Shown here piece by piece: positions 19,238 through 59,503 of a DNA stretch of 64,000 bases. The notes below the pieces were generated by a model. It ran no database searches. It saw nothing but the letters and a program-made list of their open reading frames with translations, and was not told the DNA's origin. The stretch comes from Mizuhopecten yessoensis (taxonomy: Eukaryota), in contig NW_018406583.1 in the NCBI RefSeq assembly GCF_002113885.1, forward strand, positions 873,478 to 937,477, read 5' to 3'. Each line of letters begins with the position of its first letter. Position 1 is the stretch's first letter. Made by a program: the position numbers and the translations under genes.

Positions 19238-21409
19238 ATGCAAATGCAAGGAAAGTGTGTCCCAAAACGTAAGGGCATACTCCGTGTATTAGCGGGGCTA
19301 GTAGCGTTTACAGCGCTATCCGTGTTTGTTGAGTTGTCTGTTGCAGACTGGCGATATGACATCGTGGCAAACACAAACCCAGAACCTCCGCAAGACGTTC
19401 TTGTCATCGACATCCCACCAACTGCCATCCCGGTGAAGAAGGAGAAGATCGTATACCAGTCGTACGAGAAAGATTTCGCCTACCCATCTTTTGTAAACTT
19501 GTCCGCATTAGTTGCCGAGGCAACCCGAAAGAACATGACTTTTATACAGAACCCCCCGATAAACTACCATCCTTATAGGTATAACAACGTGCCAGCCAAC
19601 TGCCGACTACCGATGGATGGAGGTTCTACAAAACGCATCCTCATCATTGTCAAGTCGTTTGTGGGAAACGTTGAGATGCGTGTTGCAATAAGATCGCTTT
19701 GGGAGAAGATTAAAGACCCTTACATGGCTCTCGTGTTCATGCTGGGGGAATATCCGAAGGAAAATAATGGCCGACGCTGGCCCATAGACAGGGAGAATAG
19801 GATCTACAAGGATCTTATACAGGAAAACTTCGATGATTCCTACTTTAACAATACATTGAAGACCATCATGGGGTTTAACTGGGCAGTGAACAAATGTCCA
19901 CAGGCGGACCTGCTTCTCTTTCACGATGATGACTATCACGTGAAATATACGAATCTGTCCATTCATCTTCGAAAAGTATTAGCAGTCAACAAAACAAACA
20001 TCTACAGCGGAAGTTTGGCGGTAAAAGCAAGACCTTACAGAAATCGAGGAGAGCGTTGGTTTGTAACCATTCATCAGTACCCGTTCGATGTTTTCCCGCC
20101 TTATGTAGGCGGTGGAGCGTACGTTGTGTCAGCAGACGTGGCAAGGAAATTTCAAATGGCGTTCCCACATGTACGGTACCTGAGTTTTGACGACGTGTAT
20201 TTAGGAATTGTGGCTAGGAAGTTAGATATCATACCTACAAGCGATATGCTTCTCGATACTCTCTACCCGGATGCTCTCGCGCAGGAGTGTTCCCATAAAG
20301 CGAACGAATTATTCAGAGGTCAGTGTCCTCTAGCGATCAAAAAGCGGCAAATAGCAAACACGCCGGAAATTGTTGAGGAGAGTGAAACGAATAACACCGA
20401 TAACAGTAGCGCTATGCCATATCTGTCGTTTGAAAATAGTTTTTCTTTCCCGTTAGAGGCTAATATAAGATCGGCAATTAATGGGAAGATAATTCATAAT
20501 CATAGAATAAATCTCAGAAATATAAATGCTCATCCCTATCTGTATATAAGTGAACCGGCAGAGTGTAAGTTTGCCAAACACAGTCAAAATATCATTGTAT
20601 TTGTGAAGTCTTATGTTAAAAATGTAGAACAAAGGGCTGCAATACGTAGGATGTGGAACGAAAGTCTTCAGACGCATTCCACATCTCTAAAGTTGGTTTT
20701 CCTCCTCGGACAGGGAATCTATCCAGAAGACAAACCTCCTGTGGAAGCGGAGGTCGAGACTCACAAAGACATTTTACAGGAGGATTTCACAGAACACTAC
20801 AGAAACAATACCTACAAAGTTGTTATGGCACTGAATTGGGTAATGGCGAATAAAGCATGTTTTAGGACGCGTTTGCTGCTGTTTCTAGACGACGATTACT
20901 ATGTACATCAGAAAGAATTGCTGACATATTTGCACGGGTTATCCAACCATAATACACTATTTCTCGGAAAAGTCATGAAAAAGCAGGTTCCATGCAGACT
21001 TGAACGCGACAAGAGAAATCTTGTCTACAAGCAATATCCATTCGATATGTTTCCTGACTATATAAAAGGTGGTGTGTTTTTATTGTCATTCGAAGTTGCC
21101 CGTAAGTTTCAGCTCTCTTTTCCATACGTGAAGTATCTTCCCCTGGACGATGTGTACCTTGGAATCGTGGCCTGGAAGTTGCACATAGACCCCAAACATG
21201 ACCTAGTTTTTGACACATCGTCGCGTTCTGCTTTAACTTACGAATGTTCACATGTTGCCGCGCGGCTTATAAAAGGAAAATGTCCTCTGCGCGGAGAAGT
21301 TATAAAGAGTACTGTTCCTAAGATAACCAGACGAAGAGAAGGATTTTTTTCCCGTTTGATGAAATTACCTCAAATTTTTCAGTCCTTGTTTGGTAAGTTT
21401 ACGAAATAA
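19238..21409 (+). CDS. Tandem two-domain GT31 glycosyltransferase, both domains with intact motifs (G2, 723 aa)
   Basis: Type II TM anchor (ILRVLAGLVAFTALSVFV). Domain 1 has LFHDDDYH, PPYVGGGAY, FDDVYLG, ECSH. Domain 2 has LFLDDDYY, PDYIKGG, LDDVYLG, ECSH. Acceptor ttcctacag ends at 19027; AATAAA overlaps the stop. Confidence 0.93.
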   Translation: MQMQGKCVPKRKGILRVLAGLVAFTALSVFVELSVADWRYDIVANTNPEPPQDVLVIDIPPTAIPVKKEKIVYQSYEKDFAYPSFVNLSALVAEATRKNMTFIQNPPINYHPYRYNNVPANCRLPMDGGSTKRILIIVKSFVGNVEMRVAIRSLWEKIKDPYMALVFMLGEYPKENNGRRWPIDRENRIYKDLIQENFDDSYFNNTLKTIMGFNWAVNKCPQADLLLFHDDDYHVKYTNLSIHLRKVLAVNKTNIYSGSLAVKARPYRNRGERWFVTIHQYPFDVFPPYVGGGAYVVSADVARKFQMAFPHVRYLSFDDVYLGIVARKLDIIPTSDMLLDTLYPDALAQECSHKANELFRGQCPLAIKKRQIANTPEIVEESETNNTDNSSAMPYLSFENSFSFPLEANIRSAINGKIIHNHRINLRNINAHPYLYISEPAECKFAKHSQNIIVFVKSYVKNVEQRAAIRRMWNESLQTHSTSLKLVFLLGQGIYPEDKPPVEAEVETHKDILQEDFTEHYRNNTYKVVMALNWVMANKACFRTRLLLFLDDDYYVHQKELLTYLHGLSNHNTLFLGKVMKKQVPCRLERDKRNLVYKQYPFDMFPDYIKGGVFLLSFEVARKFQLSFPYVKYLPLDDVYLGIVAWKLHIDPKHDLVFDTSSRSALTYECSHVAARLIKGKCPLRGEVIKSTVPKITRRREGFFSRLMKLPQIFQSLFGKFTK

Positions 21410-25578: not shown

Positions 25579-26721
25579 ATGACTTCGCGAAAATCCAAGA
25601 AGCAGATAATTGTCACGACGGTAATTCTATTCATAGTTGGTAACATAAGTCTGGTGTTTGAGATTAGTTCTGTTGAAGAATCGTATGGTCGTAGAAAGCT
25701 TATCATAAGTGGCAATATGTATCAAAACGTTTCTATCTTTCAACATTATCCTCTTGATGTAGATCTAGCAAATGTTGTCAATGAGGCAATATTACATAAC
25801 ACAAACATTCCGTATAAACCCATTAACCCGTATTCCTATAAATGTATACACACTCCTGTTCCGTGTGATTTTAAACGAGCCGAGAATGAAAGCAATTCAA
25901 TCCTTATCGTTGTGAAATCACATGTACTTAACACCAACCAACGACTTGCTATTCGACATGTGTGGAAGAATGCACGTGACAAACGCGTTCGGCTGGTATT
26001 CCTGCTTGGAACTTACAGTTTAGAAGGCGAACAATGGCGGATTGAAAAAGAAGTTAAACTGTATCACGATATCGTTCAGGGAAACTTCGTCGACAGTTTT
26101 GATCACATCACATACAAAATAGTTATGGCATTTAACTGGATCGATAGACATTGCACCCAAGCTGACTTTTTGCTATTCGTTGATGATGATTTCTACGTGT
26201 ATCCGACAGCAATGTTGACATTTCTAAGACAACTACCAAATCAACAGGATACATTTATTGGAAAAGTAATACAGAAACAATTTGTTAAACATAATTAAGA
26301 TATTCAAAAAACGCCTAAATTTAGGCATTATACATTTAAGGAAATACCGACGTATGTGCATGGTGGATCATTCGTGATGTCACAAGACACGGCGCACAAG
26401 TTTCATATAGCTTTTCCCTATGTTAAATACTTTGAAATTGATGATATCTATCTTGGAATTGTGGCACAAAAACTCGGCATCCATCCGCGGCATGACTCGC
26501 GTTTCGACACCAGTAGCCCCCTGGCACTAGCCTTTGAGTGTTCTCACTTTGCCCCGAGACTGTTGAAAGGGGAGTGTCCCCTATCTGGATGGCGCAGGAC
26601 TCTCCCTCCTGTAACAGTAACACAGGTGACAAAGAAGCCCGATACCTTCTGGGTACGCCTCAGGATGTTACCCCAAATAATGAAATCTGCAGCAAAACAG
26701 ACGTTTCATTCATTTGTATAG
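25579..26721 (+). pseudogene. GT31 gene with a single in-frame TAA at 26296-26298 (G3); pseudogene, null allele or base error
   Basis: ORFs 25579..26298 and 26356..26721 are in the same frame (offset 777 nt). Reading through gives GKVIQKQFVKHN*DIQKTPKFRHYTFKEIPTYVHGG, the same length as the matching segment of G2 domain 2. FVDDDFY, IDDIYLG and ECSH are retained. Acceptor ends at 25392. Confidence 0.85.
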
Positions 26722-29700
26722 GATATAACAATGTTCTTTTAGAACCATAAGTACTCATAAGTATTTGCAATAAATACATATTTGATAAGTTTACGTTTTA
26801 CTGTTGACATGTACTTCTAGTTACATTATCTGATATCTTTTTTTCCAATCAAAGTTCTTTTATATCAAATCATGTAGTCTAATGTGAGAAGGCGTGATTA
26901 AGTTGAGATATCTTATCATTCGCACTGTTCTTGCACTGTAGTTACATGTATTTCAGTCGTACATAAAACAGCACATATAAATGTAGATATTGTTACATGC
27001 AATTACAGCAGTGACATTTGCTAAAGTACTATTTCAAAAATGTACAAATCCTTGCCCAAGTTTCAAAACGTTTCTTAACTTAAAGAAATGCCTTAATTTA
27101 AATCTTAAGAAAAGGAAATTTTCCTTGAAGTTTGTAATTTCCCCATGTAAAGTGTAAGGTTCGAAAGACTTTACTTGGGTAAGGTAACGTTAAGGAAAAT
27201 GGAATATTATATAATTGCTATGACATAACATTGTGAATTGAAAACATAGCTAACGTTTCTTTCTTGCAATATTTCAAGATTTAGATTATTACAATTTCTA
27301 ATTATGAAATAAAAATCAAGGTCATTCTCAAAAATGCATATCTATCTCTTATTGTATCAATAGCAGGAGGCAACAAATCTGAATAGAAACAACATGTGTT
27401 AGAGGGAAACCTCGTCCGTTTTCCACTCAGAAAAAAGCTTACTCCGCTAATATAAACCTTCTATGTAGTGTTTAAAACAGCGTAAATGCCTAAAGAGTAG
27501 GTTAATTTGCGGTTTAAGGTTAGCTAATCCGTCGACAATCACTTTCATTATGACTTCCAATAGAATAAATAAATTTAATTCAAACTTATAAATGTCGATA
27601 AATAAATCCTCAAAACGATATATGTTTTGTTAAAGACCTCAGTGGTTATGATCACTTACGCTCTCTGCACTCCTGGAATATGTCATAGCAAAAAGTTAGG
27701 CTCAGTGTGCGCCACCTTCTGATAAATCAAGAAGACTAGCTTGATCCATTGATGTATATCAAAAGAATCTCGCGGTCGCAAAACGGTAAAGTTGACTAGC
27801 TTTGAAGTCGGGGCCGCTCCTCAGTAATCTTCAAATGAAAGATATCAGCCTAGTGACTGGTCAGGGTACTTTTATCTGAGAGTAATAAAAAAAGTAGTCG
27901 CGCGCCTTCAATTTTGTTATGACATATCCCAGGGTTGCAAAAATCGAACGTGAGTGTAACCCCTGGAGTATCGAGGATGGCCCTGAGGATATATCAGGTG
28001 TAATTGTGCAACTTGTACAAACCTCTAGTTCAATACCTCCTCTTAAAAAGGGCAGGATATAAATCAGTAACGATAAGTGAATACAATATGTATGTATTAC
28101 CGTGCGAGTTTGAAACTAAATTCTTGCAGTGTTGACATTTTAAACTTATCACCTGTCGCAATATAACCCTTCCCATATCATATCATGTATCAACAGGAGA
28201 CCCCAGATGTCCCGAAGGCAATAGGGCTAATATAGATCGATGGCTAATATAGATCGAGGGCTAATGCGGGTTAGGATGTGGAAGTGGTCCTATGATAACA
28301 TTGCTATCATATACTGATCGTTATATATATTTGTCTACAATATCAAAAGGTTAAGCAAAAACAAAACTCGAGTGTAACGGAGGCATGTTTTCTAAAATGA
28401 GTTGATGACAAAGAACTATCGATTAAAGGGAGGTAATTCTCGAGCAAGTTTTAAACGATTTCAAAATATTCATTGAATAAGGTTACGCTGGCTCTAAATG
28501 ACCGGAGTTGATGATGGGCTGTGAAATAAAAGCACACACTTCTCACATTTGGCGTTCGGTACGTAAACCTTAATCAAATTACGTGTAGGTTCCTTTGTCG
28601 CATATTTGGCAATATAAGAGTTAGTTTTATGGACTTGTCATGTCAAGACATTTTTTGTGTAAGTTGGGCACTGGCTCTTAAGGTCATAGGAGTGTGTTGA
28701 TAAACGGAAATAGGAAGTACATCTCTAGTTGAAAATCCAATGTAGGGAGACAGTATCACAATTTCCGCATATTCTAATGAGTCAAGAGCTGTGATGAATA
28801 TTGCATGTTTATTAATGACAGAACAGTGTGTTCTCTCAATATTAAAGTATTTCAAGGCAATCCAGGCATTAATTCAGATCTTTTTTTTATCAATGAGTCA
28901 CATGTGTCCATTTTTCTATACTTCAGGAAACCTGCTACCTAGCTATTACAACTGTGTAGTTTTTCAAGAAAGATAACTCTTACATGCAATTACTATGTGT
29001 ATATGGTTTTATTATAAAATGTAATTTTAAAATTAATTTTACACAATTTCAGCATTTATTAAATTAATAAATATTAATGCAATACTAATTTCTGTCAGTA
29101 TCATTTTTATTGACATTATTTTGCAAAAAAATGTGTCTTTCATTTTTGTTTCAAAATTCACTCCTAATTACATAAATTTCCATTTAAAATCATTAAAATT
29201 CTGACAACCTATATTTTTTTGTGGCAGAAAATTTTCTTTACTTCAAAGCAATATAACTACAAAATTTGAAAAAAATCTACTGAGAAATGGTGACACAATC
29301 ATATTACCTTGGACAAATGTAAACGTTATTGATAAAACAAAATTATTAACAATTTATACTATTGATTTATTTGTACGTTTTCAACTTATAAATTGTTATT
29401 TGCAAATATGAAATCAATTCGAGTTTGGATAATGTATTTGCCTTCATTTGCCAATATGCTATTGCCATGTTGACAAAAATACATTTCCGGGTATTTTTAC
29501 CATGTACGCTGTCAAAGAACACACTGCACATGATTTAAATAAGAAAGTTAAACACACAAAAAAATGTTTCAGAATGCACCAAAGACATAATGAAAGAATC
29601 TTACAACAAAGATGTATGGGTGTTCGTTTACGGAATGACTTGTATTTTAGTAATAGCCATACTTTTATAAACGCTAAATAACGTACGTGAATACACTGTG

Positions 29701-32251: not shown

Positions 32252-34396
32252 ATGGCGAAATGGACGGTTACTCGACCTCGCTGTCCCTTGTTTCATCCTA
32301 TCTTTGCCGTAAGCCTGATCAGTGTTCTTGGCCTGCTGTTACAGATGCTGAATCTTGCCCTGAAAACTACAAGTAGGCCATCCATTTGGGACAGTGAAGG
32401 AAACATTCACTCATTCCTAATTCCAACGGACGAATTAAACTCATCTGACATTGAATACCTGTCGTATCAAAAGGCTTACGCGTATCCCCCTGAAGAAGGC
32501 AATCTGTCTCAGATGATTAGGGATTACATTTCACATGACAAACCAATACCCCTTAAAGTTATCAATCCTCATCCATTCTCATACATACATCGTCCGTTGC
32601 CATGCAGTTTCGATAATGGTGCTTCTGGCAAGATGATTGTGCTTATAAAGTCCTTTGCTTTAAACTTTGGATTTCGAAAGGCTCAAAGAACACTCTGGAA
32701 GAGCGTGAACCAGACATCAATGTGCTACGTGTTCATGCTAGGTTATAACGGTAATCCGGGTGTTCAGAGGAGGATAAATGAGGAAGCCAATCGCTATAGG
32801 GACGTTATGCAAGAAGATTTCATCGATGCTTACTTCAACAACACTTACAAAACAATCATGGCGTATAACTGGGTAGTACGATATTGTCCCGACGCTAATA
32901 TTTTGCTGTTTCAGGACGACGATTACCACGTTAAATGGAATGAAGTTGCAATCTATATGCGGAAACAATTCCAGGATAAGAGTGAGAATGTGTATTGTGG
33001 TAGTCTGGCCCTTAATGCCCCTCCATATAGAAAGGAGAATACTAAGTGGTTTCTTACTTTCCAGGATTATCCTTTTGACCTGTTTCCGCCGTACATAGGA
33101 GGGGGTGCATATGTTGTGTCTTTTGATGTCGCTCAACGATTTCAACGTGCATTCTCTTATGTCAGGTATTTAGGTATAGATGATGTCTATCTCGGCATTG
33201 TGGCCCAGAAACTGTCCATTCGGTCAGAAAACGAGACTCTCTTAGACACAGTGAACAGAGATTCACTAGCTAAAGAATGTTCGCATGTCGTTGATAACAT
33301 CATTAATGACAAATGTGATTTAGCTGACAGGAAGCGGGAAATATTTGAGCTTGGGTTGCAGACGACAACACTTCCAACTAAAGCCATAGTACTTGTAAAT
33401 GGTCAACCAGTTGAGGTGGATGATACTATATATTTATCATACGACGAAGAATTTGCATATCCTTTGAAAGTAAGACTTGATGAAGCAGTGAAGGGTGTGG
33501 TACTATACAACAACAAAATTCGTTTTTCTCCTATCAATGTTCATAATTTTTCGACAATAAATCAGCCATTGCCATGTTCATATCCGTCGCAAACGGGGAG
33601 ACATCAAAACTTGCTCATCCTTGTAAAAGTAGATTCAAGCAATTACAAAATACGCAATGAGATCAGATCTTTGTGGAAATCTCTTAATGATCCTGCGATC
33701 AGAGTGATATTCCTGCTAGGACATTCCTCGAAAATTCAAACTCGAGTCGACAAGGAAAGTGCTCACCACAAAGACATTCTACAGGAAAAGTTCAAAGAGC
33801 ACCATATGCACTCTACCCGCAAAATTGTAATGGGATTTAACTGGGTAGAGACCAAATGTTCTAAGGCCGACCTGGTGTTAGTGTTAGAGAGTATATACCA
33901 CGTTAACTCGACACAGATGATAGATCATCTGCAAAGATTATCAAAGAAGAAAGACGTTTTCATAGGTAAACTTTGGAAAAATGTTAGTCCTCACAGAGAA
34001 AAAGATAATAAATGGAAACTGAGTTATGACCATTATCCATTTGACAAATTCCCTCCCTATTTGTCAGGTGGAGCTTTCGTGACATCTTTTAACATTGTAC
34101 GTAAGTTTAAAATTGCTTTTCCATATGTTAAGTACTTCGGAATTGACGATGTTTACTTGGGTATAATTGCAAAGAAGCTTCGCATAATACCGACACACGA
34201 CTCCTACTTTGAACCTCTTAGCACAATAGCTCTTGTTAAGAGGTGCCCTCGAGAGTTTTATAGGATCGTTAATGGACGATGTGTGGAGCAGAATTCTCTT
34301 CCGTCGTCAGGTTCTAATAAACATTATATGTGCAACATTTTTCTTTACTTTTACCTTTCTGCGTACTCTTTTATTCAAATTTTATATTTCTGCTGA
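32252..34396 (+). CDS. Tandem two-domain GT31 glycosyltransferase; domain 2 lacks DxD; hydrophobic C-tail (G4, 714 aa)
   Basis: TM anchor. Domain 1 has LFQDDDYH, PPYIGGGAY, GIDDVYLG, ECSH. Domain 2 has LVLESIYH in place of DDD but keeps PPYLSGGAF and GIDDVYLG. Acceptor ttttctgcag ends at 32150. Confidence 0.92.
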   Translation: MAKWTVTRPRCPLFHPIFAVSLISVLGLLLQMLNLALKTTSRPSIWDSEGNIHSFLIPTDELNSSDIEYLSYQKAYAYPPEEGNLSQMIRDYISHDKPIPLKVINPHPFSYIHRPLPCSFDNGASGKMIVLIKSFALNFGFRKAQRTLWKSVNQTSMCYVFMLGYNGNPGVQRRINEEANRYRDVMQEDFIDAYFNNTYKTIMAYNWVVRYCPDANILLFQDDDYHVKWNEVAIYMRKQFQDKSENVYCGSLALNAPPYRKENTKWFLTFQDYPFDLFPPYIGGGAYVVSFDVAQRFQRAFSYVRYLGIDDVYLGIVAQKLSIRSENETLLDTVNRDSLAKECSHVVDNIINDKCDLADRKREIFELGLQTTTLPTKAIVLVNGQPVEVDDTIYLSYDEEFAYPLKVRLDEAVKGVVLYNNKIRFSPINVHNFSTINQPLPCSYPSQTGRHQNLLILVKVDSSNYKIRNEIRSLWKSLNDPAIRVIFLLGHSSKIQTRVDKESAHHKDILQEKFKEHHMHSTRKIVMGFNWVETKCSKADLVLVLESIYHVNSTQMIDHLQRLSKKKDVFIGKLWKNVSPHREKDNKWKLSYDHYPFDKFPPYLSGGAFVTSFNIVRKFKIAFPYVKYFGIDDVYLGIIAKKLRIIPTHDSYFEPLSTIALVKRCPREFYRIVNGRCVEQNSLPSSGSNKHYMCNIFLYFYLSAYSFIQILYFC

Positions 34397-36102: not shown

Positions 36103-37251
36103 TTAATGTTTACCAGATGTAAATATTTGTTGAAAAAACAGTAGTGATTTCTGAATCAACATCATCATATTTGTAAATACATCTGTCAAATTCTTTATTG
36201 TATATTCAAACCCTTTAGCTACACGTCCAGTGGAAACATATGCGACAGTTTGACATCGTGCCGCCAATAACTCTGAGGGAGTATGGGAGCATTCCTTTGT
36301 AATGCTTAAATGGTCTCTTCTCGACAGTTCTGTAGAGTGCCTTGGAGATATTGACAATATCTGAGCGACTATCCCTAGGTAAACGTCATCTACACCAATA
36401 TATCTGACGTAAGGAAACGCCATTTTGATTTTTTTGCTGACGTCATAAGAAATGACATAAGCCCCTCCCGCTAGGTATGGTGGATACGATCTAAAGGGGT
36501 ACACTTTAGGATCGACAAACCACGAAGATCCTACATTCCTATACGGTTGTGCCCGCCTTACAAGGTTTCCAATGAATAAATCTGTGTGATTCTTTCCGGA
36601 CTGGTATAGAAATTGAACCAGTTTATCCCATCTTACAAAATAGTCATCATCTAGAAATACCAACAATCGTGCCTCAGAGCAATACTGAGTGGCCCAGTTA
36701 AATCCCATAATAGTTTTGAAGGTATTGTTAGAGTAGGCATCAACAAAGTTTTCCTGTATCAGATCCCCGTATGTTTCATTTTCCTGAGTAATCCTGTCTT
36801 TATAATTGTCTCCAAGTCCTAACATAAATACGAGTTTAACACTTGATCGTGTAGCTTTTCTTGCCATTTTTCTTATAACAACTCTTTGGTCGATGCTTCC
36901 CACAAACGATTTCACTAACACCAGTGTATAAGGCTGTCTTGAATGTGTAAAATTGCAAGGTGATGGGGAGTAATAATATATGTAGGGGTGAGGGTTCACT
37001 TGTTGTCGAGGAAGTGGGATATTATTATTTAAATGTTTTTCTACAACCTCCCTGATGTCAAAGGTCAGGGGATAGGTATATTCCTTCGCGTTAAATCTAC
37101 TATGGTCGTTTTTTCTAGGATGAATATTGTTTTTATTGACGTTTTTGATATTGATATATAATAAATACACAAGAAATATTCCTAATAAAATACAATATAA
37201 CCGTTTTCTCTTGGGTACCGATGGAAACATTATGACTTTTCCCATATACAT
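36103..37251 (-). CDS. GT31 glycosyltransferase, single domain (G5, 382 aa)
   Basis: KRKR followed by TM (LYCILLGIFLVYLLYI); LVLVKS, LIQENFVDAYSNNTFKT, VFLDDDYF, PPYLAGGAY, GVDDVYLG, ECSH. Confidence 0.93.
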   Translation of the reverse strand: MYMGKVIMFPSVPKRKRLYCILLGIFLVYLLYINIKNVNKNNIHPRKNDHSRFNAKEYTYPLTFDIREVVEKHLNNNIPLPRQQVNPHPYIYYYSPSPCNFTHSRQPYTLVLVKSFVGSIDQRVVIRKMARKATRSSVKLVFMLGLGDNYKDRITQENETYGDLIQENFVDAYSNNTFKTIMGFNWATQYCSEARLLVFLDDDYFVRWDKLVQFLYQSGKNHTDLFIGNLVRRAQPYRNVGSSWFVDPKVYPFRSYPPYLAGGAYVISYDVSKKIKMAFPYVRYIGVDDVYLGIVAQILSISPRHSTELSRRDHLSITKECSHTPSELLAARCQTVAYVSTGRVAKGFEYTIKNLTDVFTNMMMLIQKSLLFFQQIFTSGKH

Positions 37252-39415: not shown

Positions 39416-40687
39416 AAGACACTACATTTTTTCATTATTGTTTTGTGTATTCGATGATGTATTGACATAAGTTAATCTTATCATACACTTGTTCCAAAAG
39501 ATATTTTCCGAAAATTCCGTATTTATCATAGCGTTAAGTTAACAGTGCTTGAAAACTTTAGTCTTGTTAGTTGTAACGGTTTATTGTTTGGTATGGTTTT
39601 GTTACAAAAAAAGTATGAAGGTATTTTATCATTTAATTCTTGTCATTGAAGAAGAAACTATACTAAGTTCGAATATTATGTGAAACAAAAATAATGATCA
39701 CAACGATATATAAAATATCATAACTTGATTTTAGAATTAACTTTATACCTAGGAGGTTCCTCACTTTGATTGAAAAGCTGTTATCTCGATGAATCAAAAC
39801 AACTATGATATCCAAATCTGTATTGTGTTATTTTTGGAGATATTGTATTTTGAATTATTGATCGTTTATAGCTAACAGATCTGATAGAGCTTCAATTTAA
39901 AAAGGAGCTTTTTTATAATGTTCAAGATGGAACGGTTCATGTCAATGAGCAATGTCAAACAGTTGCCTTTTGCATGAACATGATTACTTAATGTTGCCGT
40001 AAACAATGCAAACAACAACATATAGGTGCACATATCATAATAGAAAATAACGACGATATTGGTAATAAAGGAATTCATGGTTCAGTAGTTTTCATATTGG
40101 GTCGATACTGGTTGACTTAAAAAAAATAAAAATCTAGAAATACTTTAATATCAAATGCTTATATGAAGTTATATCTAAACGGTATTTTGGATAATACAAA
40201 TGCTTTCCTTTTATCTGGTTTTCCATGATTTTATTTCTACATGACGCTGAACGATTCGTACATAGCATAGATAAGAGGGTGACATGATCAAAGTTGACAT
40301 ACTTATGCTAATTTTCAAGAAAGTTGTAGTCATATTAATATTCATTAATATTGTAACAAAATCAATTGCTGAATGACATATATCCAGGATAGACAGATAA
40401 CCTGCTTGTCCACCAGAGTTACATCCCTTGCGTAGCATGTAGCCACAGTACTTACATTCAATAAAGACACGAACGAGATACAAATTAGTGTATGTTTTAT
40501 TTTTACCTGTTTATTAAATAACTACAGCAATTTTTAAACAATGCTACTTTTTATAAATCTGGTATTATTCTTAATTACAATAAGAACTTGAGCCCTATCC
40601 CTTTGACTATTCAGTATCAATACAATATGTTTGAATGGTAAAACAAAACTTAATTACAATGATAAGACAAAATACGTATCTACACAG

Positions 40688-42649
40688 TTATGGGTTATCT
40701 CTAAAGAACGAGGTCTGGTTCCTCCTATCAAAATGTGGATCATGGCTCGGTATTACCATTAGTTTACTCGCTACTATTCCAAGATACAGATCAACATTAG
40801 GGCAGTATTTGACAAATGGAAATACAACATGGAAAGACCTGACGATGTTAAATGACATGACGTAATTTGAACCAATCACAGACGGCGGAACGTGATCAAA
40901 AGGATAATCTCCCTCGCTCACATACAAAGGTGAGCCTTGTCGTCTATCGGGATTCCTTTCATCAACAACGTGACCAAGAAATACACCATTATTATTGTTT
41001 TTAGTTTTAATGAGTTTCTTCATAAATGCAGTTATCATGTCGATATCTACATTGATATTTCCATCAAGAAATATAACGAAATCAGTGCTTTTGCAATATT
41101 GCACAATCCATGCGAAGGATGATACTGTTTTAATGGTATCAAAGAATTTGTCTTTCACTGCAGAGACCTGTATTATGTCACCATAATTCTTACTTTCAGC
41201 ATTTACGTCTTTCTGATGGATATCCTCTGATCCTAGTACGAATACTTGTCTGACGGTTCCTATATCCGTATATTTCCACATCTCCCGAATGGCTGACCGC
41301 TGCTCTGTGTCGGTAGGATCAGACCAGATGACTACAAGAATATGGGCCGCGTCGTGCCCTTTCGTCGTAAACTTACATTGAGTCGCATTGTGTACAAGAG
41401 GTAGTAACTTTCTGTTGGTTGGTGTTTGAGGTATCTCTTCGCAATGAAGAATTTTTCGCTTCACAAGTCGTCTTAAATTAATATTTAGAGGATACGAGAG
41501 TAACTGTCTAGAAATGTTTTTACCTGCTAATGCAAATAATGATAATGGATTTGCAGGATCAAGATAAGGATCATAAGTCTGTTGTACTGACAAAATCCTT
41601 GCAACATTGCCTAGGTAACCATTTATATCATTGTCACTATTTTTAATATAGGGGAAAATAATTTGAAACTTTTTTGATACATCACGTGACACAAGGTTAA
41701 CGTTGGAGAAGGCAGCCTTTGTCACAGCAGTGTTACCAATGAACCCCGATTTATTAGGTGGTAATGATGGTACAAGATCACCACGAAATAAAGGTGATGG
41801 TTTAAGAGTCACTAAGTCTCTTATGTACTCGAATAATATGTCTGATCTTACTTGAAGCGTCTCGTTAACGCTGAGGATAACGTCGGCTTTAGAACAATGT
41901 TTAACGGCCCAGTTGTATCCCATTATCAACTTTAGAGTACTGTTCTTGTAGGAGTCATGGAAATCCTCCTGTAGAATATCTCTATGCCTGTCACTCTCTT
42001 CCTCAATCACATATTGGTCGTCCTCTAGAAACCCCAGCAGGAACACTAGACGTGTATTTGGATCCTTCAGTTCTCCCCAAGTCCGTCTAATTATCTTTCT
42101 ATAATAATAATTTCCGGGCCGCGAGTACATCAGAATTACGATTTTAGAACGGTTTCCGTGGAAATTGCAGTCACTTGGCAAGGAAATCGGTTTATACGGA
42201 TGTGGGTTCGTTGGTGGGAAGGGTGAACCGCCGATTCGGATATTTTCTAGGACAGTAGTTATGTTCAAATCTGTCAAAGATTTCCTTTTTTCCTCTTGTG
42301 CAGTTGTCGTAACGTTCGTAATAGCTTGGAGCTGACTGTGAACCGAAATGGCAAGCGAAGTATCTGACGCTTCTTTTCTACTTGTGTTGCCAAAGCTGTT
42401 AACATTAGTAGAACAAAGACTTTCTGACTGTCCTCCGAATAAATGGCAATCCACTACAGGGCGTCTATCTTTCCTGTTATCGGGAATCTGCTCCAGTAAA
42501 GAAAAGTTCATCTTGTAGATGCATTCAAGGGTTGCAAACACCATCAGGATACCGATCATTTTCACAATAACGCTTCTCCTGGTGAAAAGAAACAGTACTT
42601 GTAACAGTTTGTTTCTGATCGCTTGATAGTGCAACAGGACCAAACCCAT
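40688..42649 (-). CDS. Tandem two-domain GT31-like protein with both catalytic sites degenerate (G6, 653 aa)
   Basis: GT31 scaffold motifs (RRTWG, VFLLG, DILQEDFHDSYKNSTLKLIMGYNW, DIIQ, YPFDHVPP, YLG) occur twice. The DxD positions read SVNET and FLDGN. Acceptor on - at 42670-42671; candidate donor gtaaga at 43121-43126. Confidence 0.88.
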   Translation of the reverse strand: MGLVLLHYQAIRNKLLQVLFLFTRRSVIVKMIGILMVFATLECIYKMNFSLLEQIPDNRKDRRPVVDCHLFGGQSESLCSTNVNSFGNTSRKEASDTSLAISVHSQLQAITNVTTTAQEEKRKSLTDLNITTVLENIRIGGSPFPPTNPHPYKPISLPSDCNFHGNRSKIVILMYSRPGNYYYRKIIRRTWGELKDPNTRLVFLLGFLEDDQYVIEEESDRHRDILQEDFHDSYKNSTLKLIMGYNWAVKHCSKADVILSVNETLQVRSDILFEYIRDLVTLKPSPLFRGDLVPSLPPNKSGFIGNTAVTKAAFSNVNLVSRDVSKKFQIIFPYIKNSDNDINGYLGNVARILSVQQTYDPYLDPANPLSLFALAGKNISRQLLSYPLNINLRRLVKRKILHCEEIPQTPTNRKLLPLVHNATQCKFTTKGHDAAHILVVIWSDPTDTEQRSAIREMWKYTDIGTVRQVFVLGSEDIHQKDVNAESKNYGDIIQVSAVKDKFFDTIKTVSSFAWIVQYCKSTDFVIFLDGNINVDIDMITAFMKKLIKTKNNNNGVFLGHVVDERNPDRRQGSPLYVSEGDYPFDHVPPSVIGSNYVMSFNIVRSFHVVFPFVKYCPNVDLYLGIVASKLMVIPSHDPHFDRRNQTSFFRDNP

Positions 42650-44437
42650 GATGGAAGGTTAATACACTTCTGAAATGAGAAATAGACAGACGACCAATTA
42701 AATAATGCTGCTGATTTCTATTATAAATTCCTCGTTTAGTCTTTTTTCCAAGATGAAGGGCGGAAGTCTACTCTTTCCTTATAAAATATTTTCGATGAAA
42801 ATGAAATAGTTCGTTTTCATTTTCGTAGTTTCAGTTTAAAAGATATATCATTGGTAATTCCAAATATGGTACATTTTATGAACAAACCAGATCAAATGAG
42901 TAACACATAGTCGCCATAGTCAACACACGTTTCAAATTGTGCTAAATATAGCAATATGTATATATATCATAATGACTCAATACTGTAATAAATCAACCGA
43001 AACCACCTGTATTATATCTATGCTAATTTGATGTTAACAGAGATAGCAATTAATGTATACCTATATACATATACTACCGACACCCTACTTAGTATATTTC
43101 TTATAATAACACATATTGCTTCTTACCTTTCATACTGGGTCTGGCGAATGAAAATTTCTTACAAGACATAAAATATTTCTTCCACATTTTAAACAAAATA
43201 TCTATGAAAATCACATATTCTATACAAAAGCATTCAGCGAGTATTGTTAGTCATTGTTCTGTATTTATTTTAATGTAATTAACACTAAACAAAAACCTTT
43301 GTTATACATACAAACATTTAAAATGGCGTTTTCAAAGACACAATTATTTAAGACTTATCGTATAAACTATCGCACTTCAAATATTTAGTTAAGTCGGTCA
43401 ATCAGCTCTTTATTATCAACAATCTATTTGTAAACAAACCCTTTACAGTATTGTCTTTTACGAGTCAGTAAACATTGTAAAATTACTAAGGAACGATAAC
43501 CAGGTGTCAAATGTCGAATTAAACAGTTTGTTTTGAGGAGTGTCGATACCCTGGGATAGATTTAAATATTTGATTGGAGGATATGACATTTAACAAAACC
43601 TTAAGGTACTAAAGAACCAAGTCGAATTTGTATTTGGCAGCCTATATCTAAGCGTAGATCAAGTGTTCACTGGCAGCGGTCCCTAAAATATTGAATTTAT
43701 ACGGACAAATGAAACTGTCGTTAAGGCGACTTTTGGAATTTTGTATTTCTAGGTTTGAAGCAAAGAAAAATATACGCTAGTAGAGGAATGTAGTTTAACT
43801 TTTTATACAAAAAATAAGGGGCTTGTAGCCCGTCTTCAAAGGTGCATGAATATATTTTTGTACAACATGTAGTCAATCAAAGTCAATTAAAGTCATTTAA
43901 AGTCTTGTAATTGTCAAAATTATTTGGACATTGGATGTAAACTCACATGCAGATGTATTTGTAGATTTGACCTGGATTAACATGCCGATTGTCGTCAATG
44001 AAGCAGAAGACGCTTACCCTTCCGAATCACCTGGTCTTATACTTCTTCTTCTGTTTCATTGGTCTCCATGTTAATCTTTCCTTTGATGACACTTACTGTT
44101 CTTTTTCGTTTTCTTTTTAATATGATGCAGTTATATCAAATTGTTATTAATGTGTATTGAACAAACAGTTAATTATTGTCATACAGACTTCGACATTGTC
44201 GTTCATATTAATGGCTTATTAATTTATTTTACAATTTTGTAAGGACAAATTAACTTATTTGCGATGTGTTAATGTAATTTTAACAATAGCAAGGCCCAAC
44301 TTTATGTGTTAATAATAAAACTGTCTTTTTCATACACATCTACCTCCGCACAACTATACGTGTTCAAAATAAATAAATTGTAAACAGATTTACCCAATGG
44401 CACTTTTCAAAGATGAACGCAACACACAAACACATAG

Positions 44438-44760: not shown

Positions 44761-47031
44761 TCATGTTACATCAACAACAGGTAATTTTGATTTGATTTTA
44801 ACTTTCCTTATTACTGTGATTTTTTTGGGTGTAGTTTTAGTTTTGAGTAGATCCTTTGATGAAATGCATTCTTTTGTAATTATCTTCGCAACAGACGAAT
44901 CCGGGCACTCGGCCACAGCCTCGAGTTTTGGCGGATCGACAAATATACTGTCTTCCTTGGGTTTTACTTGTAATTTTCGCGCTACAAAACCTAAGTATAC
45001 GTCACTTCGTCCAAAATATTTCACAAATGGAAATGCAACTTGAAATTTCCAGGCTACGTCTGATGATATAACATAAAACTTTTCATTAAGAAATGGCGGG
45101 AACTTTTCCAATGGATACGTTTTCCGTGACAGGAATAACCGTGAATCTAAATCGCGTGTTGGATATGCGTTTTTAACTAACTTTCCTCTAAATATGTCTG
45201 ATGATTGCTTGCTTGGCAAAACGGTCCTTAAGTATTTTAAAGTTCTGTTGATATCAATATCATATCCTTCCTTCAATACAACGATGAAATCTGCTTGAGC
45301 ACAGAACTTAGCCGCCCAATTGAACCCCATTATTGTTTTTCGGGTACTGTTCATATAATCGTCCCGGAAGTCCTCCTGAATGACGTCACGATACTTCCGG
45401 CTTTCCTCGTCAACTAATGATTGTTTCGAGCGTCCCATCCCTAACAGAAAAACTTTCTTGAAGTTATAGTCTCGATGAATGCCCCACAATTTTCTCAGAT
45501 ACAATCGCTCTTCTACGTTGGACGCTTGCGACTTGACTAAAAGAAGAACGTTTTTTACGTGTTTGTCTGCATGAAGGAAAGAACATCTGTTTGGGCGATG
45601 GACGTAGTTGTAGGGATGCGGGTTGATTGGTGGAATGCTAGAGTCTTTGTGACGTAGAAGTTTATCGTTCACTAGTTGCGTCATGTTAACCATCAATGGA
45701 TAGTTGAATGTTGAGTTATCTGTAAGGAATTTACCATCAGGTAACGGAATGGTTGGTTTCAGAAGAAGTCGGCGTTTCCTATCCGCTATTTGACAATTCC
45801 CTGACACAAGCTCTGCTGGGTCGTGCGAACATTCTTTTGCCAATGAAATGTTAGAGAGAGTTGAAAAATGAGCGTCGTATTTTGGGGTTATAGCAAGTTT
45901 TTTAGCTACAATTCCTAGATATACATCATCTATTCCTAAATATTTTACGTATGGAAATGCAACTTTAAATTTCCTTGCCACATCTTTGGAAAGCAAATAT
46001 GCCCCGCCTCCAATATATGGTGGAAAGTGATCGTATGGATATTCATGGAAACTTGTTTTCCATTTTGAATTTTCGTTCCGTTCTGGCTTTGCAGCTATAG
46101 CAGTTGATCCGAGATAAACGCCTGTTTTATTCATCTTTTCGATTCCTCTGATGTATTTAATCAAAGCGTGAGGCTGAACGTGATAATCGTCATCTAGAAA
46201 CAACAACATGTCGGCCTCCCAACAGTTCTTCATTGCCCAGTTGTATGACATAACCGTTTTCAAAGTGTTATTCATGTAGGCGTCTAAGAAATTCTCTTGG
46301 ACAATATCATTATACTGGCGGACCTCCTCGTCCACCAAGGCCTGATAGGACCCGTTGTAACCTAGCATGAACACGCGCCGTACGTAGGGGTCACGCAAAT
46401 CCCTCCACATCGCCCTTACCGCCGCCCTTAGCTCCATATTTGACACGGCAGATTTAATAAGCACCAATACCGTTTTCGTGCTGTTGTTATGGTGCGGGAA
46501 ATGACACTTGGGAGGAGGCTGGATAAAACTGTATGGGTGAGGATTGATCTGGCGATAAGGTATGCGCTGTTTGAACACTATCAGGTTGTTTACAAGACGT
46601 TCTAAGTCTATTTCCAACGGATAAGAATAACTGTCGTTGTATGATAAATATTTACGAGATGTTTCGTTAAATTCTTCTTCATCCTCTGGTCCCACAAAGA
46701 CGGAAGGTAGTTGTATTTCCATATCATCAAATCGTTCATCGTAAAAGCTGTTATCCAAGGCACCGTCTGCTTCTATATCTATCACCGTATCGGTAACGTT
46801 ATTTTCAGTTTCAACTACTTCTAAAGGTTTCCGAAATTCCTGTTTGATAGCTGTTTTTCCAGTCACTATTATGATATCGGTTTTTTGAATCATGTAAGAA
46901 AAATTAAGTAAAAGTCCAAGAAATCCAAACAACAACACAGCAAAGAAGAAGCAAAAAATGCTCTTAATATTTAGTTGTTGTATCAAAAATACATGCGTTA
47001 TCTTTAACTTGTTGCTGACAAACTTGAACAT
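44761..47031 (-). CDS. Tandem two-domain GT31 glycosyltransferase; domain 2 degenerate (G7, 756 aa)
   Basis: TM anchor and acidic stem. Domain 1 has LFLDDDYH, PPYIGGGAY, GIDDVYLG, ECSH. Domain 2 has VVLKEGY, PPFLNEKFY, GRSDVYLG. Basic C-tail. Acceptor on - at 47220-47221. Confidence 0.92.
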   Translation of the reverse strand: MFKFVSNKLKITHVFLIQQLNIKSIFCFFFAVLLFGFLGLLLNFSYMIQKTDIIIVTGKTAIKQEFRKPLEVVETENNVTDTVIDIEADGALDNSFYDERFDDMEIQLPSVFVGPEDEEEFNETSRKYLSYNDSYSYPLEIDLERLVNNLIVFKQRIPYRQINPHPYSFIQPPPKCHFPHHNNSTKTVLVLIKSAVSNMELRAAVRAMWRDLRDPYVRRVFMLGYNGSYQALVDEEVRQYNDIVQENFLDAYMNNTLKTVMSYNWAMKNCWEADMLLFLDDDYHVQPHALIKYIRGIEKMNKTGVYLGSTAIAAKPERNENSKWKTSFHEYPYDHFPPYIGGGAYLLSKDVARKFKVAFPYVKYLGIDDVYLGIVAKKLAITPKYDAHFSTLSNISLAKECSHDPAELVSGNCQIADRKRRLLLKPTIPLPDGKFLTDNSTFNYPLMVNMTQLVNDKLLRHKDSSIPPINPHPYNYVHRPNRCSFLHADKHVKNVLLLVKSQASNVEERLYLRKLWGIHRDYNFKKVFLLGMGRSKQSLVDEESRKYRDVIQEDFRDDYMNSTRKTIMGFNWAAKFCAQADFIVVLKEGYDIDINRTLKYLRTVLPSKQSSDIFRGKLVKNAYPTRDLDSRLFLSRKTYPLEKFPPFLNEKFYVISSDVAWKFQVAFPFVKYFGRSDVYLGFVARKLQVKPKEDSIFVDPPKLEAVAECPDSSVAKIITKECISSKDLLKTKTTPKKITVIRKVKIKSKLPVVDVT

Positions 47032-56251: not shown

Positions 56252-59200
56252 TTGTGATGGTTTTCCATCTACAGTAGTAGAGGGTGTGATGGTCCTCCAT
56301 CTACAGTACTAGAGGTTGTGATGGTCTCCCATCTACAGTAGTAGAGGTTGTGATGGTCCCCCATCCACAATAGTAGAGGTTGTGATGGTCATCCATCGAC
56401 AGTAGTAGAGGTTGTGATGGTCCCCCATCTACAGTAGTAGAGGTTGTGATGGTCATCCATCCACAGTACTAGAGGTTGTGATGGTCATCCATCTACAGCA
56501 CTAGAGGTTGTGATGGTCCCCCATCTACAGTACTAGAGGTTGTGATGGTCCCCCTTCTACAGTAGTAGAGGTTGTGATGGTCCTCCATCTACAATAGTAG
56601 GGGTTGTGATGGTCATCCATCGACAGTACTAGAGGTTGTGATGGTCATCCATCTACAGTAGAAGAGGTTGTGATGGTCCTCCATCTACAGTAGTAGAGGT
56701 TGTGATGGTCATCCATATACAGTACTAGAGGTTGTGATGGTCCTCCATCTACAGGACTAGAGGTTTTGATGGTCCTCCATCTACAGTACTGGAGGTTGTG
56801 ATGGTCATCCATCTACAGTAATAGTAGAGGTTGTGATGGTCATCCATCGACAGTACCAGAGGTTGTGATGGTCATCCATCTACAGTATTAGAGGTTGTGA
56901 TGGTCATCCATCTACAGTACAAGTGAAGAGGGGGAACTGTTAGTAGAAAAGTAAGTGGCTTGAAATCTAATGTGTGTAATCAGTTTCTTGGTGAAATTGT
57001 GATGGTTTTCCATCTACAGTACTAGAGGTTGTGATGGTCATCCCTATACAGTACTAGAGGTTGTGATGGTCCTCCATCTAATGTACTAGAGGTTGTGATG
57101 GTCATCTATCTACAGTACTAGAGGTTGTGAGGATCATCCATCTACAGTACTAGAGGTTGTGATGGTACTCCATCTACAGTACTAGAGGTTTTGATGGTCC
57201 TCCATCTACAGTACTGGAGGTTGTGATGGTCATCCATCTACAGTATTAGAGGTTGTGATGGTCATCCATCTACAGTATTAGAGGTTGTGATGGTCCTCCA
57301 TCTACAGCACTAGAGGTTGTGATGGTCCCCCATCTACAGTAGTAGAGGTTGTGATGGTCCCCCATCCACAATAGTAGAGGTTGTGATGGTCATCCATCGA
57401 CAGTAGTAGAGGTTGTGATGGTCCCCCATCTACAGTAGTAGAGGTTGTGATGGTCCCCCATCTACAATAGTAGAGGTTGTGATGGTCATCCATCGACAGT
57501 ACTAGAGGTTGTGATGGTCATCCATCTACAGTACTAGAGGTTGTGATGGTCCTCCATCTACAGTACTAGAGGTTGTGATGGTCATCCCTATACAGTACTA
57601 GAGGTTGTGATGGTCCTCCATCTACAGTATTAGAGGTTGTGATGGTCATCCATCTACAGCACTAGAGGTTGTGATGGTCATCCATCTACAGTAGTAGAGG
57701 TTGTGATGGTCCCCCATCTACAGTAGTAGAGGTTGTGATGGTCATCCATCTACAGTACTAGAGGTTGTGATGGTCCCCCATCTACAGTAGTAGAGGTTGT
57801 GATGGTCATCCATCTACAGTACTAGAGGTTGTGATGGTCCTCCATCTACAGTACTAGAGGTTGTGATGGTCATCCATCTACAGTACTAGAGGTTGTGATG
57901 GTCCTCCATCTACAGTACTAGAGGTTGTGATGGTCATCCATCTACAGTACTAGAGGTTGTGATGGTCCTCCATCTACAGTACTAGAGGTTGTGATGGTCA
58001 TCCATCTACAGTACTAGAGGTTGTGATGGTCCTCCATCTACAGTACTAGAGGTTGTGATGGTCATCCATCTACAGTACTAGAGGTTGTGATGGTCCTCCA
58101 TCTACAGTACTAGAGGTTGTGATGGTCATCCATCTACAGTACTAGAGGTTGTGATGGTCCTCCATCTACAGTACTAGAGGTTGTGATGGTCATCCATCTA
58201 CAGTACTAGAGGTTGTGATGGTCCTCCATCTACAGTACTAGAGGTTGTGATGGTCATCCATCTACAGTACTAGAGGTTGTGATGGTCCTCCATCTACAGT
58301 ACTAGAGGTTGTGATGGTCATCCATCTACAGTACTAGAGGTTGTGATGGTCCTCCATCTACAGTACTAGAGGTTGTGATGGTCATCCATCTACAGTACTA
58401 GAGGTTGTGATGGTCCTCCATCTACAGTACTAGAGGTTGTGATGGTCATCCATCTACAGTACTAGAGGTTGTGATGGTCCTCCATCTACAGTACTAGAGG
58501 TTGTGATGGTCATCCATCTACAGTACTAGAGGTTGTGATGGTCCTCCATCTACAGTACTAGAGGTTGTGATGGTCATCCATCTACAGTACTAGAGGTTGT
58601 GATGGTCCTCCATCTACAGTACTAGAGGTTGTGATGGTCATCCATCTACAGTACTAGAGGTTGTGATGGTCCTCCATCTACAGTACTAGAGGTTGTGATG
58701 GTCATCCATCTACAGTACTAGAGGTTGTGATGGTCCTCCATCTACAGTACTAGAGGTTGTGATGGTCATCCATCTACAGTACTAGAGGTTGTGATGGTCC
58801 TCCATCTACAGTACTAGAGGTTGTGATGGTCATCCATCTACAGTACTAGAGGTTGTGATGGTCCTCCATCTACAGTACTAGAGGTTGTGATGGTCATCCA
58901 TCTACAGTACTAGAGGTTGTGATGGTCCTCCATCTACAGTACTAGAGGTTGTGATGGTCATCCATCTACAGTACTAGAGGTTGTGATGGTCCTCCATCTA
59001 CAGTACTAGAGGTTGTGATGGTCATCCATCTACAGTACTAGAGGTTGTGATGGTCCTCCATCTACAGTACTAGAGGTTGTGATGGTCATCCATCTACAGT
59101 ACTAGAGGTTGTGATGGTCCTCCATCTACAGTACTAGAGGTTGTGATGGTCATCCATCTACAGTACTAGAGGTTGTGATGGTCCTCCATCTACAGTACTA

Positions 59201-59503
59201 GAGGTTGTGATGGTCATCCATCTACAGTAGTAGAGGTTGTGATGGTCCTCCATCTACAGTACTAGAGGTTGTGATGGTCATCCATCTACAGTACTAGAGG
59301 TTGTGATGGTCATCCATCTACAGTAGTAGAGGTTGTGATAGTCCCCCATCTACAGTAGTAGAGGTTGTGATAGTCATCCATCTACAGGACTAGAGGTTGT
59401 GATGGTCCTCCATCTACAGTACTAGAGGTTGTGATGGTCATCCATCTACAGTACTAGAGGTTGTGATGGCCATCCATCTGCAGTAGTAGATGATGTGATG
59501 ATC
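56252..59503. repeat. 32-bp minisatellite, ~100 units, intronic
   Basis: Unit ctacagtactagaggttgtgatggtc(a/c)tccat; interrupted at ~56922-57000 by a copy of upstream unique sequence. Confidence 0.97.

Follow-up and report, generated by a model that had tools for sequence, protein, structure and literature searches.

A transcribed scallop gene encoding two glycosyltransferase family 31 domains, both predicted to lack the canonical catalytic apparatus

The inactive proteins listed for glycosyltransferase family 31 (GT31) are Cosmc and CHPF, in which the DxD motif is deleted or modified (PMC8022947). Cosmc, itself devoid of transferase activity, acts in the service of an active GT31 paralogue (PMC8022947), and the CHPFs, which have two domains and are catalytically dead, form heterodimers with their active two-domain paralogues, the CHSYs, and thereby stabilise them (PMC13389171). 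The architectures listed in a survey of GT31 are X/GALT and FRINGE/X only (PMC8022947). The gene that we describe here, G6, encodes a protein with two GT31 domains in tandem. It is located on the minus strand (positions 40688-42649) of a 64,000-nucleotide stretch of DNA from the Yesso scallop Mizuhopecten yessoensis (contig NW_018406583.1, positions 873,478 to 937,477), which we call the window. The G6 product is very probably a retained and expressed protein that is incapable of canonical GT31 chemistry. The apparent absence of the catalytic apparatus from both domains, together with the signs that the protein has been kept by selection, would make it a double pseudo-glycosyltransferase. At a probability of roughly 0.6, we read G6 as a maintained, membrane-anchored protein of this kind that, by analogy with the systems just named, acts as a partner of active paralogues.

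CHPF1 and CHPF2 resemble G6 in being type II proteins with two GT-A domains, of which the N-terminal one is GT31-like, in having a modified DxD motif, in that both domains are (for G6, are predicted to be) catalytically silent, and in being paralogous to active two-domain enzymes. It is for their stabilising effect on those enzymes that the CHPFs have been retained (PMC13389171, PMC8022947). CHSY3-CHPF chains are also among the structural matches that span both domains of G6 (Z 16.6). The two proteins differ in how they are built: CHPF joins a GT31-like domain through a cystatin-like linker to a GT7-like domain, whereas G6 joins two GT31 domains of the PF01762 B3GALT type through a short linker. 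G6 has no sequence orthology to CHPF, is scallop-restricted and lies within a tandem cluster. We regard the likeness as functional analogy only, and a heterodimer containing G6 is putative.

The initial annotation of this stretch had compared G6 to Cosmc (C1GALT1C1). If G6 is inactive as predicted, the comparison is apt in this respect, since Cosmc too is a GT31-derived type II membrane protein without a DxD motif. However, Cosmc is a single-domain protein of the C1GALT (Fringe-like, PF02434) branch, found in vertebrates, resident in the endoplasmic reticulum and equipped with a defined client peptide, whereas G6 has two B3GALT-branch domains, an independent origin, and its nearest relatives among the B3GALT-like paralogues of scallops. 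CHPF1/2, as two-domain dead paralogues of two-domain active enzymes, are the closer parallel; because the architecture of G6 is the same as that of its active neighbours G2, G4 and G7, G6 is nearer to the logic of CHPF than to that of Cosmc. After Cosmc and CHPF, G6 is the third case of an inactive GT31 protein that arose independently and was retained, and as far as seen it is restricted to scallops.

The gene is already annotated, as an enzyme. An exact look-up finds the identical 653-aa protein recorded in NCBI for Mizuhopecten yessoensis, and a second NCBI model, OWF49093.1, bears the name 'Beta-1,3-galactosyltransferase brn' and differs from it only by a 40-aa internal gap. Since the product carries the database name of a beta-1,3-galactosyltransferase ("brn") and is almost certainly no enzyme, annotation transfer would mislead. 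Our search of the literature brought up no paper on tandem GT31 genes in scallops, and none on pseudoenzymes of the GT31-GT31 type.

Domain architecture and former active sites

The G6 open reading frame (ORF) runs from ATG to stop without an internal stop codon in the ORF listing, and a frame of this length is expected by chance at ~3e-21 for the base composition of the window (35% G+C, stop-codon probability 0.07). Pfam finds the family PF01762 (Galactosyl_T, GT31) twice in the protein, at 158 bits against a cut-off of 23 (E 3e-46); the match is to PF01762 and not to PF02434. Two orthologues were available for comparison: one from Argopecten irradians (XP_069104466.1, 56% identity to G6), and a 608-aa ORF on a Logan contig of SRR27895284, a scallop-like sample, with 47% identity (the third species in what follows). 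Judged from its sequence, G6 is probably a secretory-pathway type II membrane protein with a short tail, a signal anchor, a fast-evolving stem and two GT31 domains (Table 1). A 17-residue hydrophobic segment follows a conserved 'RR' in all three orthologous proteins, with Kyte-Doolittle means of 2.0 and 2.6 in the two that are not from Mizuhopecten. The anchor of G6 is what one would expect of a type II protein, the topology that Golgi glycosyltransferases have. The linker between the two domains is kept in both orthologues and is conserved like the domains themselves, with 45% of its columns invariant.

We aligned both G6 domains with the six neighbouring paralogues, and domain 2 also with B3GALT5 and B3GNT2; a canonical neighbour, aligned to the same structures, served as the control for the mapping. 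In B3GNT2 the last Asp of the DxD motif (D247) and the C-terminal His are metal ligands, D246 binds the ribose and D245 is directed towards the donor sugar, D333 is the catalytic base, and D215 and K223 bind the uracil; kcat/Km drops 3,680- to 15,800-fold in the mutants K149A, D245A, D332A and D333A (PMC7948508). B3GNT2 and B3GALT5, two active GT31 enzymes of solved structure, are the proteins that domain 2 matches best in sequence and in fold (phmmer E 5e-13 and 1e-20, respectively), with the same order of secondary structure elements. In domain 2 of G6, K149 corresponds to W442, D245 to D529, D246 to G530, D247 to N531, the Gly loop to I-G-S (followed by N595), D332 to V619 and D333 to D620, the last of which also aligns with the Asp of 'ED' in B3GALT5. 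The C-terminal His is missing, as the chain stops at P653, one residue short, and all three orthologous proteins end one residue ahead of the canonical His. Domain 2 thus keeps the equivalents of D245 and D333 and has lost those of K149, D246, D247, D332, the Gly loop and the C-terminal His. The loop reads GSN, GLN or ATN across the orthologues, and the positions equivalent to D215 and K223 vary as D/N/G and K/K/Q.

Domain 1 has undergone comparable changes and in addition lacks the acceptor loop that B3GNT2 and B3GALT5 possess: the segment 'P.R...W....YP.D.FPPY' is deleted. Its former DxD triplet reads NET in Mizuhopecten, the GGG of the Gly loop is replaced by FSN, the position of K149 is occupied by Y, and the xED motif is disrupted by a one-residue insertion ('NDINGYLG', compared with 'NVDLYLG' in domain 2). 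The 'CSH' of the paralogues has become 'AGK', so that a Lys stands at the position of the C-terminal His, and the uracil positions are D/E and K. On the basis of these alignments, both domains appear to be without the apparatus for metal-dependent inverting glycosyl transfer.

Much of this had been recognised in the initial annotation, which described an intact 653-aa ORF made of two GT31 domains without DxD, GGG or xDD motifs, a deleted YP.D.FPPY segment in domain 1 and a missing C-terminal CSH module in both domains. The ORF listing and the two PF01762 matches bear out the overall description, and the alignment with the paralogues agrees with respect to GGG, the deleted segment and the CSH module. 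The statement on DxD needs qualification: the triplets are indeed NET and DGN, but the first Asp of the motif (D529) is kept in domain 2. Similarly, the xDD motif is broken in domain 1, whereas in domain 2 V619 replaces D332 and the second Asp, D620, is kept in alignment with D333; because the Asp of the catalytic base is retained in domain 2, the claim that xDD is absent overstates the loss.

The AlphaFold2 model of G6, built on a 23-row alignment, has a mean predicted local distance difference test score (pLDDT) of 76, with values of 80-94 in the cores of both domains, and a predicted template modelling score (pTM) of 0.55. Low scores are found in the stem and at residues 294-313, the site of the deletion. 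The model has a helix at residues 2-52, and the order of strands and helices is alike in the two domains. In VIA-align comparisons, the model of domain 2 (residues 380-653) matches B3GNT2 over 252 residues with Z 24.7 and a root-mean-square deviation of 2.8 A, and B3GALT5 with Z 23.7. The model of domain 1 (residues 164-383) matches Drosophila C1GalT1 (DmC1GalT1, Z 15.0) and Manic Fringe (Z 14.4) in VIA-align, and also resembles generic GT-A enzymes (Foldseek and VIA-align). Domain 2 is thus predicted to be a complete GT31 fold, and domain 1 a GT-A core without the GT31 acceptor loops.

The two domains are conserved in different parts. In domain 1, conservation is highest in the half that binds the nucleotide ('ELKD.N..LVFLLG', 'MGYNWAV.HC..ADVIL'), whereas the acceptor half is degenerate; domain 2 has the reversed pattern, with 'FLDGNI', 'Y.SE.D.PFD..P' and 'VD.Y.G.VASKL' among its most conserved segments. 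These segments, which comprise the acceptor-side loop 'Y.SE.D.PFD..P' (aa 576-590) and, with D620, the xED helix 'VD.Y.G.VASKL', would be expected if G6 were a lectin-like pseudoenzyme whose domain 2 binds a glycan in the acceptor cleft without modifying it, and which functions as a sensor, as a receptor for cargo, or as a competitor that hides acceptors from the active paralogues. By contrast, domain 2 drifts at the positions that contact the nucleotide, and the extent of the match to B3GNT2 predicts an intact cleft architecture. However, the conserved segments are also core strands and helices, so that their conservation may be structural, and three sequences cannot separate a pocket from a core. 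We consider glycan binding as the principal function unlikely; it is compatible with a partner role and does not exclude one.

The same residues could also indicate that domain 2 is still an enzyme, which transfers in a non-canonical manner, either independently of metal or with Asn531 and water as ligands, and maybe from another donor. D529, whose equivalent contacts the donor sugar, and D620, the equivalent of the catalytic base, are invariant; 'DGN' as a whole is invariant and not drifting; and metal-independent GT-A enzymes exist, one of which, C2GnT-L (3otk, 2gam), is among the structural matches. Against this stands the replacement or absence of K149, D246, D247, D332, two of the three glycines in the Gly loop, and the C-terminal His, and the finding that in B3GNT2 the substitutions K149A, D332A and D245A (D245 being retained in G6) each cost at least 3,680-fold (PMC7948508). 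Moreover, the uracil ligands differ between the orthologues, no compensating conserved basic pair was identified, and the whole acceptor half is missing from domain 1. Residual enzymatic activity is therefore improbable in our judgement.

Conservation and transcription

Orthologues were sought in two word-indexed searches (with the protein and with a three-species profile) and in an exhaustive HMMER search over 1.84 billion representatives. Below the orthologues the exhaustive search shows a gap from E-170 to E-100, followed by paralogues or fused multi-domain models. The sequences ranked just under the G6 orthologues include P0008, P0009 and P0015, which are 1,900-2,160 aa long and contain 8-9 Galactosyl_T stretches; either they are proteins of great length with many GT31 domains, or their gene models have run tandem clusters together.

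At the Argopecten locus the gene order G7-G6-G5-G4 is retained. The three orthologues have in common the deletion in domain 1, a triplet other than DxD in domain 1 (DET in Argopecten and MDT in the third species), 'FLDGNI', 'VD[IL]Y[LI]G' and the C-terminal end 'SF[FL]R..P'. Since these degenerate features are common to the three species, the degenerate state is ancestral to the three sampled scallop lineages. Between Mizuhopecten and Argopecten, nonsynonymous divergence (dN) is 0.322 and synonymous divergence (dS) 2.6, which is saturated; the ratio of the two (omega) is ~0.12, an order-of-magnitude figure given the saturation and the number of orthologues. This was the only pair for which omega could be computed, the dS of the method of Nei and Gojobori (NG86) being saturated or undefined for most pairs. 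Across G6 the dN values amount to 0.32-0.49 overall, with 0.29-0.47 in domain 1, 0.32-0.51 in domain 2, 0.31-0.37 in the linker and 0.75-0.99 in the stem. Among the neighbouring genes, dN is 0.355 in the canonical G5 and 0.146 in G7; the similarity to G5 indicates that G6 is not unusually fast-evolving for this cluster.

In a neutral simulation restricted to substitutions, the G6 frame survives K=0.05 in 2% of the trials and K>=0.2 in none. Shared motifs, low dN and a frame that does not persist under neutrality all point to purifying selection after the catalytic residues were lost. The altered G6 protein thus appears, from sequence comparison, to have been kept by purifying selection since before the split of the three scallop lineages. 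In the domain tree, domains 1 and 2 of G6 each form a 100/100 three-species clade, on stems of 1.42 and 1.26 changes per site, and the tips are much shorter than these stem branches. Such branch lengths suggest that the domains changed rapidly after duplication and came under constraint later. The order among the domain groups is not settled in this tree (open forks), and a phmmer hint that domain 1 of G6 resembles domain 2 of G7 and G4 could not be confirmed.

In the Yesso scallop G6 is transcribed and functional, and it consists of one non-coding 5' exon and one coding exon. Positions 39700-43700 of the window were compared with sequencing runs, among them X1 and X4, which come from different studies. 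The X1 contig covers 40509-42692 at a depth of 17.6 and the X4 contigs cover 40592-42671 at a depth of 12; all are identical to the window and without an internal joint. Neither run covers 39700-40500 or 42782-43183, and because the contigs are confined to the exon, the pattern is one of RNA and not of DNA. An X4 contig departs from the window at 42671 and continues with 15 letters, TTCATACTGGGTCTG, that match the window once only, at 43129-43143. As two bases at the splice are ambiguous, we place the joint at 43127|42669, which yields a GT-AG intron at 42670-43126. An upstream ATG at 43133 would, read by eye, meet a stop once spliced. The acceptor at 42670 and the donor at 43126 had been proposed from the sequence in the initial annotation, and the spliced X4 contig corroborates both. 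The G6 stretch is present in 19 runs from 6 studies. It is single copy in the assembly (987.6 Mb, 82,659 contigs), where the next best match has 33-36% identity.

The 40-aa gap of OWF49093.1 raised the possibility of an internal intron, which we rejected, since the segment is kept in the orthologues and is unbroken in the RNA contigs. The X1 contig extends 21 nt beyond the acceptor into the intron (to 42692) and then continues for 35 letters that are absent from the window, and low-depth X1 pieces lie at 43214-43461. The extension and the pieces may come from an alternative 5' exon, from unspliced transcripts or from a chimeric contig. A 44-nt portion of the G6 3' untranslated region (UTR), 40593-40636, recurs in more abundant contigs (depth 55-69) and in X23 reads, in which it has unrelated flanks and an A>G difference at 40616; a short dispersed repeat is the probable explanation.

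A proposed partner role and its alternatives

Under the reading that we favour, the GT-A domains of G6 would associate with catalytically competent paralogues, for example with its neighbours in the cluster, and G6 would stabilise, fold, localise or modulate these active partners, in a relation like that of CHPF1/2 to CHSY1/3 or of Cosmc to C1GALT1. Binding of an acceptor glycan may be a further part of this role, through the former cleft of domain 2, which is well conserved. Because G6 adjoins its probable clients, an enzyme/pseudoenzyme partnership is directly testable through co-expression of the neighbours.

A number of observations weigh against this reading. The partner role is argued purely by analogy. 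The former active-site elements of domain 2 are highly conserved and D529 and D620 are kept, so that residual or unconventional catalysis or glycan binding would also fit. The orthologue-level proteins found are three only (P0001-P0003), the Mizuhopecten protein included, which, with the saturated dS, limits what omega can say. The label of the runs listed as 'RNA?' is a guess that draws on one spliced overhang and on the exon-limited coverage, and two raw RNA-seq runs of M. yessoensis contain zero reads of the G6 ORF, which implies that expression is not ubiquitous and is limited to certain conditions or tissues. Furthermore, in the A. irradians assembly codon 75 of the orthologue, located between the anchor and the GT31 domains, reads TAA in frame, and the Argopecten tip of domain 2 is ~4x as long as the Mizuhopecten tip, compared with 1.6-2.5x in neighbouring genes. 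There may have been some relaxation in the Argopecten lineage, and G6 may be dispensable there.

The context of the A. irradians stop is 'NCRLP*KPPELERLC', and at the aligned position the third species has a Lys. RefSeq annotates just the downstream 524 aa, without the anchor (L001 9677-10003, CM084277.1); an ORF in the same frame upstream of this product encodes the tail and the signal anchor. An intron that removes the TAA was considered and rejected, as the flanking sequence is homologous to coding sequence in the other two species. Either the TAA is a nonsense allele, recent or polymorphic, or the assembly is in error at this point. With 524 downstream codons still open, any loss in A. irradians would be very young.

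This stop could be taken as a sign that G6 is a decaying duplicate, a unitary pseudogene in the making whose frame has remained open through luck or recency. A single in-frame TAA in the neighbouring G3 shows that nonsense alleles do occur in the cluster, and the two raw RNA runs without reads would fit as well. However, the degenerate state was in place before the divergence of the three lineages, which are saturated at synonymous sites, 524-653 codons are open in each lineage, dN/dS is of the low order given above, and the simulated frame never survives K>=0.2. In addition, RNA from several studies yields assembled and spliced G6 sequence, and the canonical neighbour G5 has the same dN. Simple decay is largely refuted for Mizuhopecten, and we regard it as very improbable.

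The initial annotation had taken G6 to be a dedicated non-enzymatic member of the cluster, putatively a regulator, scaffold or lectin. That G6 is a maintained, expressed gene rather than a relic is supported by the syntenic orthologues, the dN far below dS, the conserved replacement motifs and the spliced RNA contigs. The orthologue search and dN/dS comparison that it had proposed led to two further orthologues and the omega cited, and the structure prediction led to a model with confident GT-A cores. It had also named two findings that would speak against its reading of G6. The first, a lack of transcripts, is contradicted by the exon-limited contigs and the spliced junction in X4. The second, disabling mutations in orthologues, was found in part, in the form of the TAA in A. 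irradians; the ORF of the third species is open over its 608 aa.

The GT31 cluster and other window features

Besides G6, the window holds six further GT31 ORFs, which form a tandem cluster with it (Table 1).

Table 1. Positions of the G6 gene, of the parts of its product and of the other GT31 ORFs, numbered from the first letter of the window.
Feature	Position	Strand	Remarks
G6 complete coding sequence (CDS)	40688..42649	-	single exon; 653 aa plus stop; X1 and X4 contigs gap-free and difference-free
G6 non-coding exon 1, 3' end	43127..43143	-	loose end of X4 contig
G6 5' UTR intron	42670..43126	-	GT-AG, 457 nt; joint in X4 contig
G6 exon 2	40509..42669	-	20-nt 5' leader, CDS, ~180 nt 3' UTR; AATAAA at 40510-40515
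G6 signal anchor (predicted)	42518..42568	-	aa 28-44, IVKMIGILMVFATLECI; conserved 'TRR' just before; Kyte-Doolittle mean 2.1
G6 domain 1	41579..42232	-	aa 140-357; predicted GT-A fold, N-terminal half conserved
Former DxD, domain 1	41858..41866	-	N262-E-T; DET in Argopecten, MDT in third species
G6 inter-domain linker	41354..41578	-	aa 358-432; conserved 'YPL.IN.RRLV.RK'; coding, RNA contigs continuous
G6 domain 2	40691..41353	-	aa 433-653; full GT31 fold predicted
Former DxD, domain 2	41057..41065	-	D529-G-N within 'FLDGNI', invariant in three species
D620 codon	40790..40792	-	equivalent of B3GNT2 catalytic base D333; kept, invariant in three orthologues
GT31 ORF	6120-7367	+	one domain
GT31 ORF	19238-21409	+	two domains
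GT31 ORF G3	25579-26298	+	single-domain gene, cut by one stop
GT31 ORF G4	32252-34396	+	two domains
GT31 ORF	36103-37251	-	one domain
GT31 ORF G7	44761-47031	-	two domains

G2, G4 and G7 have the same succession of anchor, stem, GT31 domain, linker and GT31 domain as G6. They differ from it in that their domain 1 has been kept in canonical form (DDD, GGG, DD, CSH); in G2 both domains are canonical, and only G6 has no canonical domain. Domain 2 of G7 has lost metal ligands, with KEG for DDD, NEK for GGG and CPD for CSH, and the first of these triplets is KEG or KDG in the three species (KDG in Argopecten, KEG in the third species). Domain 2 of G4 has likewise lost metal ligands (ESI, CPR), and the G4 orthologue P0006 still has DDS.

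One could arrange these genes as a graded series, with two live domains in G2, one live and one dead domain in G4 and G7, and two dead domains in G6 at one end. In such a series the dead domains would constitute an obligate non-catalytic module that holds glycans or dimerises, and G6 would be a free-standing regulator on which the activity or specificity of several paralogous glycosyltransferases depends simultaneously. We find this extension of the partner reading doubtful. If it were true, the cluster would represent a lineage-specific, genomically clustered system of enzymes and pseudoenzymes for mollusc-specific glycans. The scope is narrow, being one bivalve family; within it, the cluster supplies natural intermediates, in the form of one dead domain in G4 and in G7, for the study of how the GT-A fold is repurposed.

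G3 (25579-26790, plus strand) has canonical DDD, DD and CSH motifs and a single in-frame TAA at 26296-26298, beyond which its frame is open for ~130 codons. This TAA may stem from a very recent nonsense mutation; otherwise it is a polymorphism or an error. At 11970-12903 the window contains a minisatellite with ~31 copies of a 30-nt unit. This repeat explains a 263-aa 'PSYSDVVASS' ORF (12080-12871), which is thus probably not a gene, and it is also the cause of the local peak in G+C and AT skew. A second tandem repeat, at 56252-59500, consists of 101 copies of a 32-nt unit with 91% match and accounts for the high G+C and GC skew of the interval from 56 to 60 kb.

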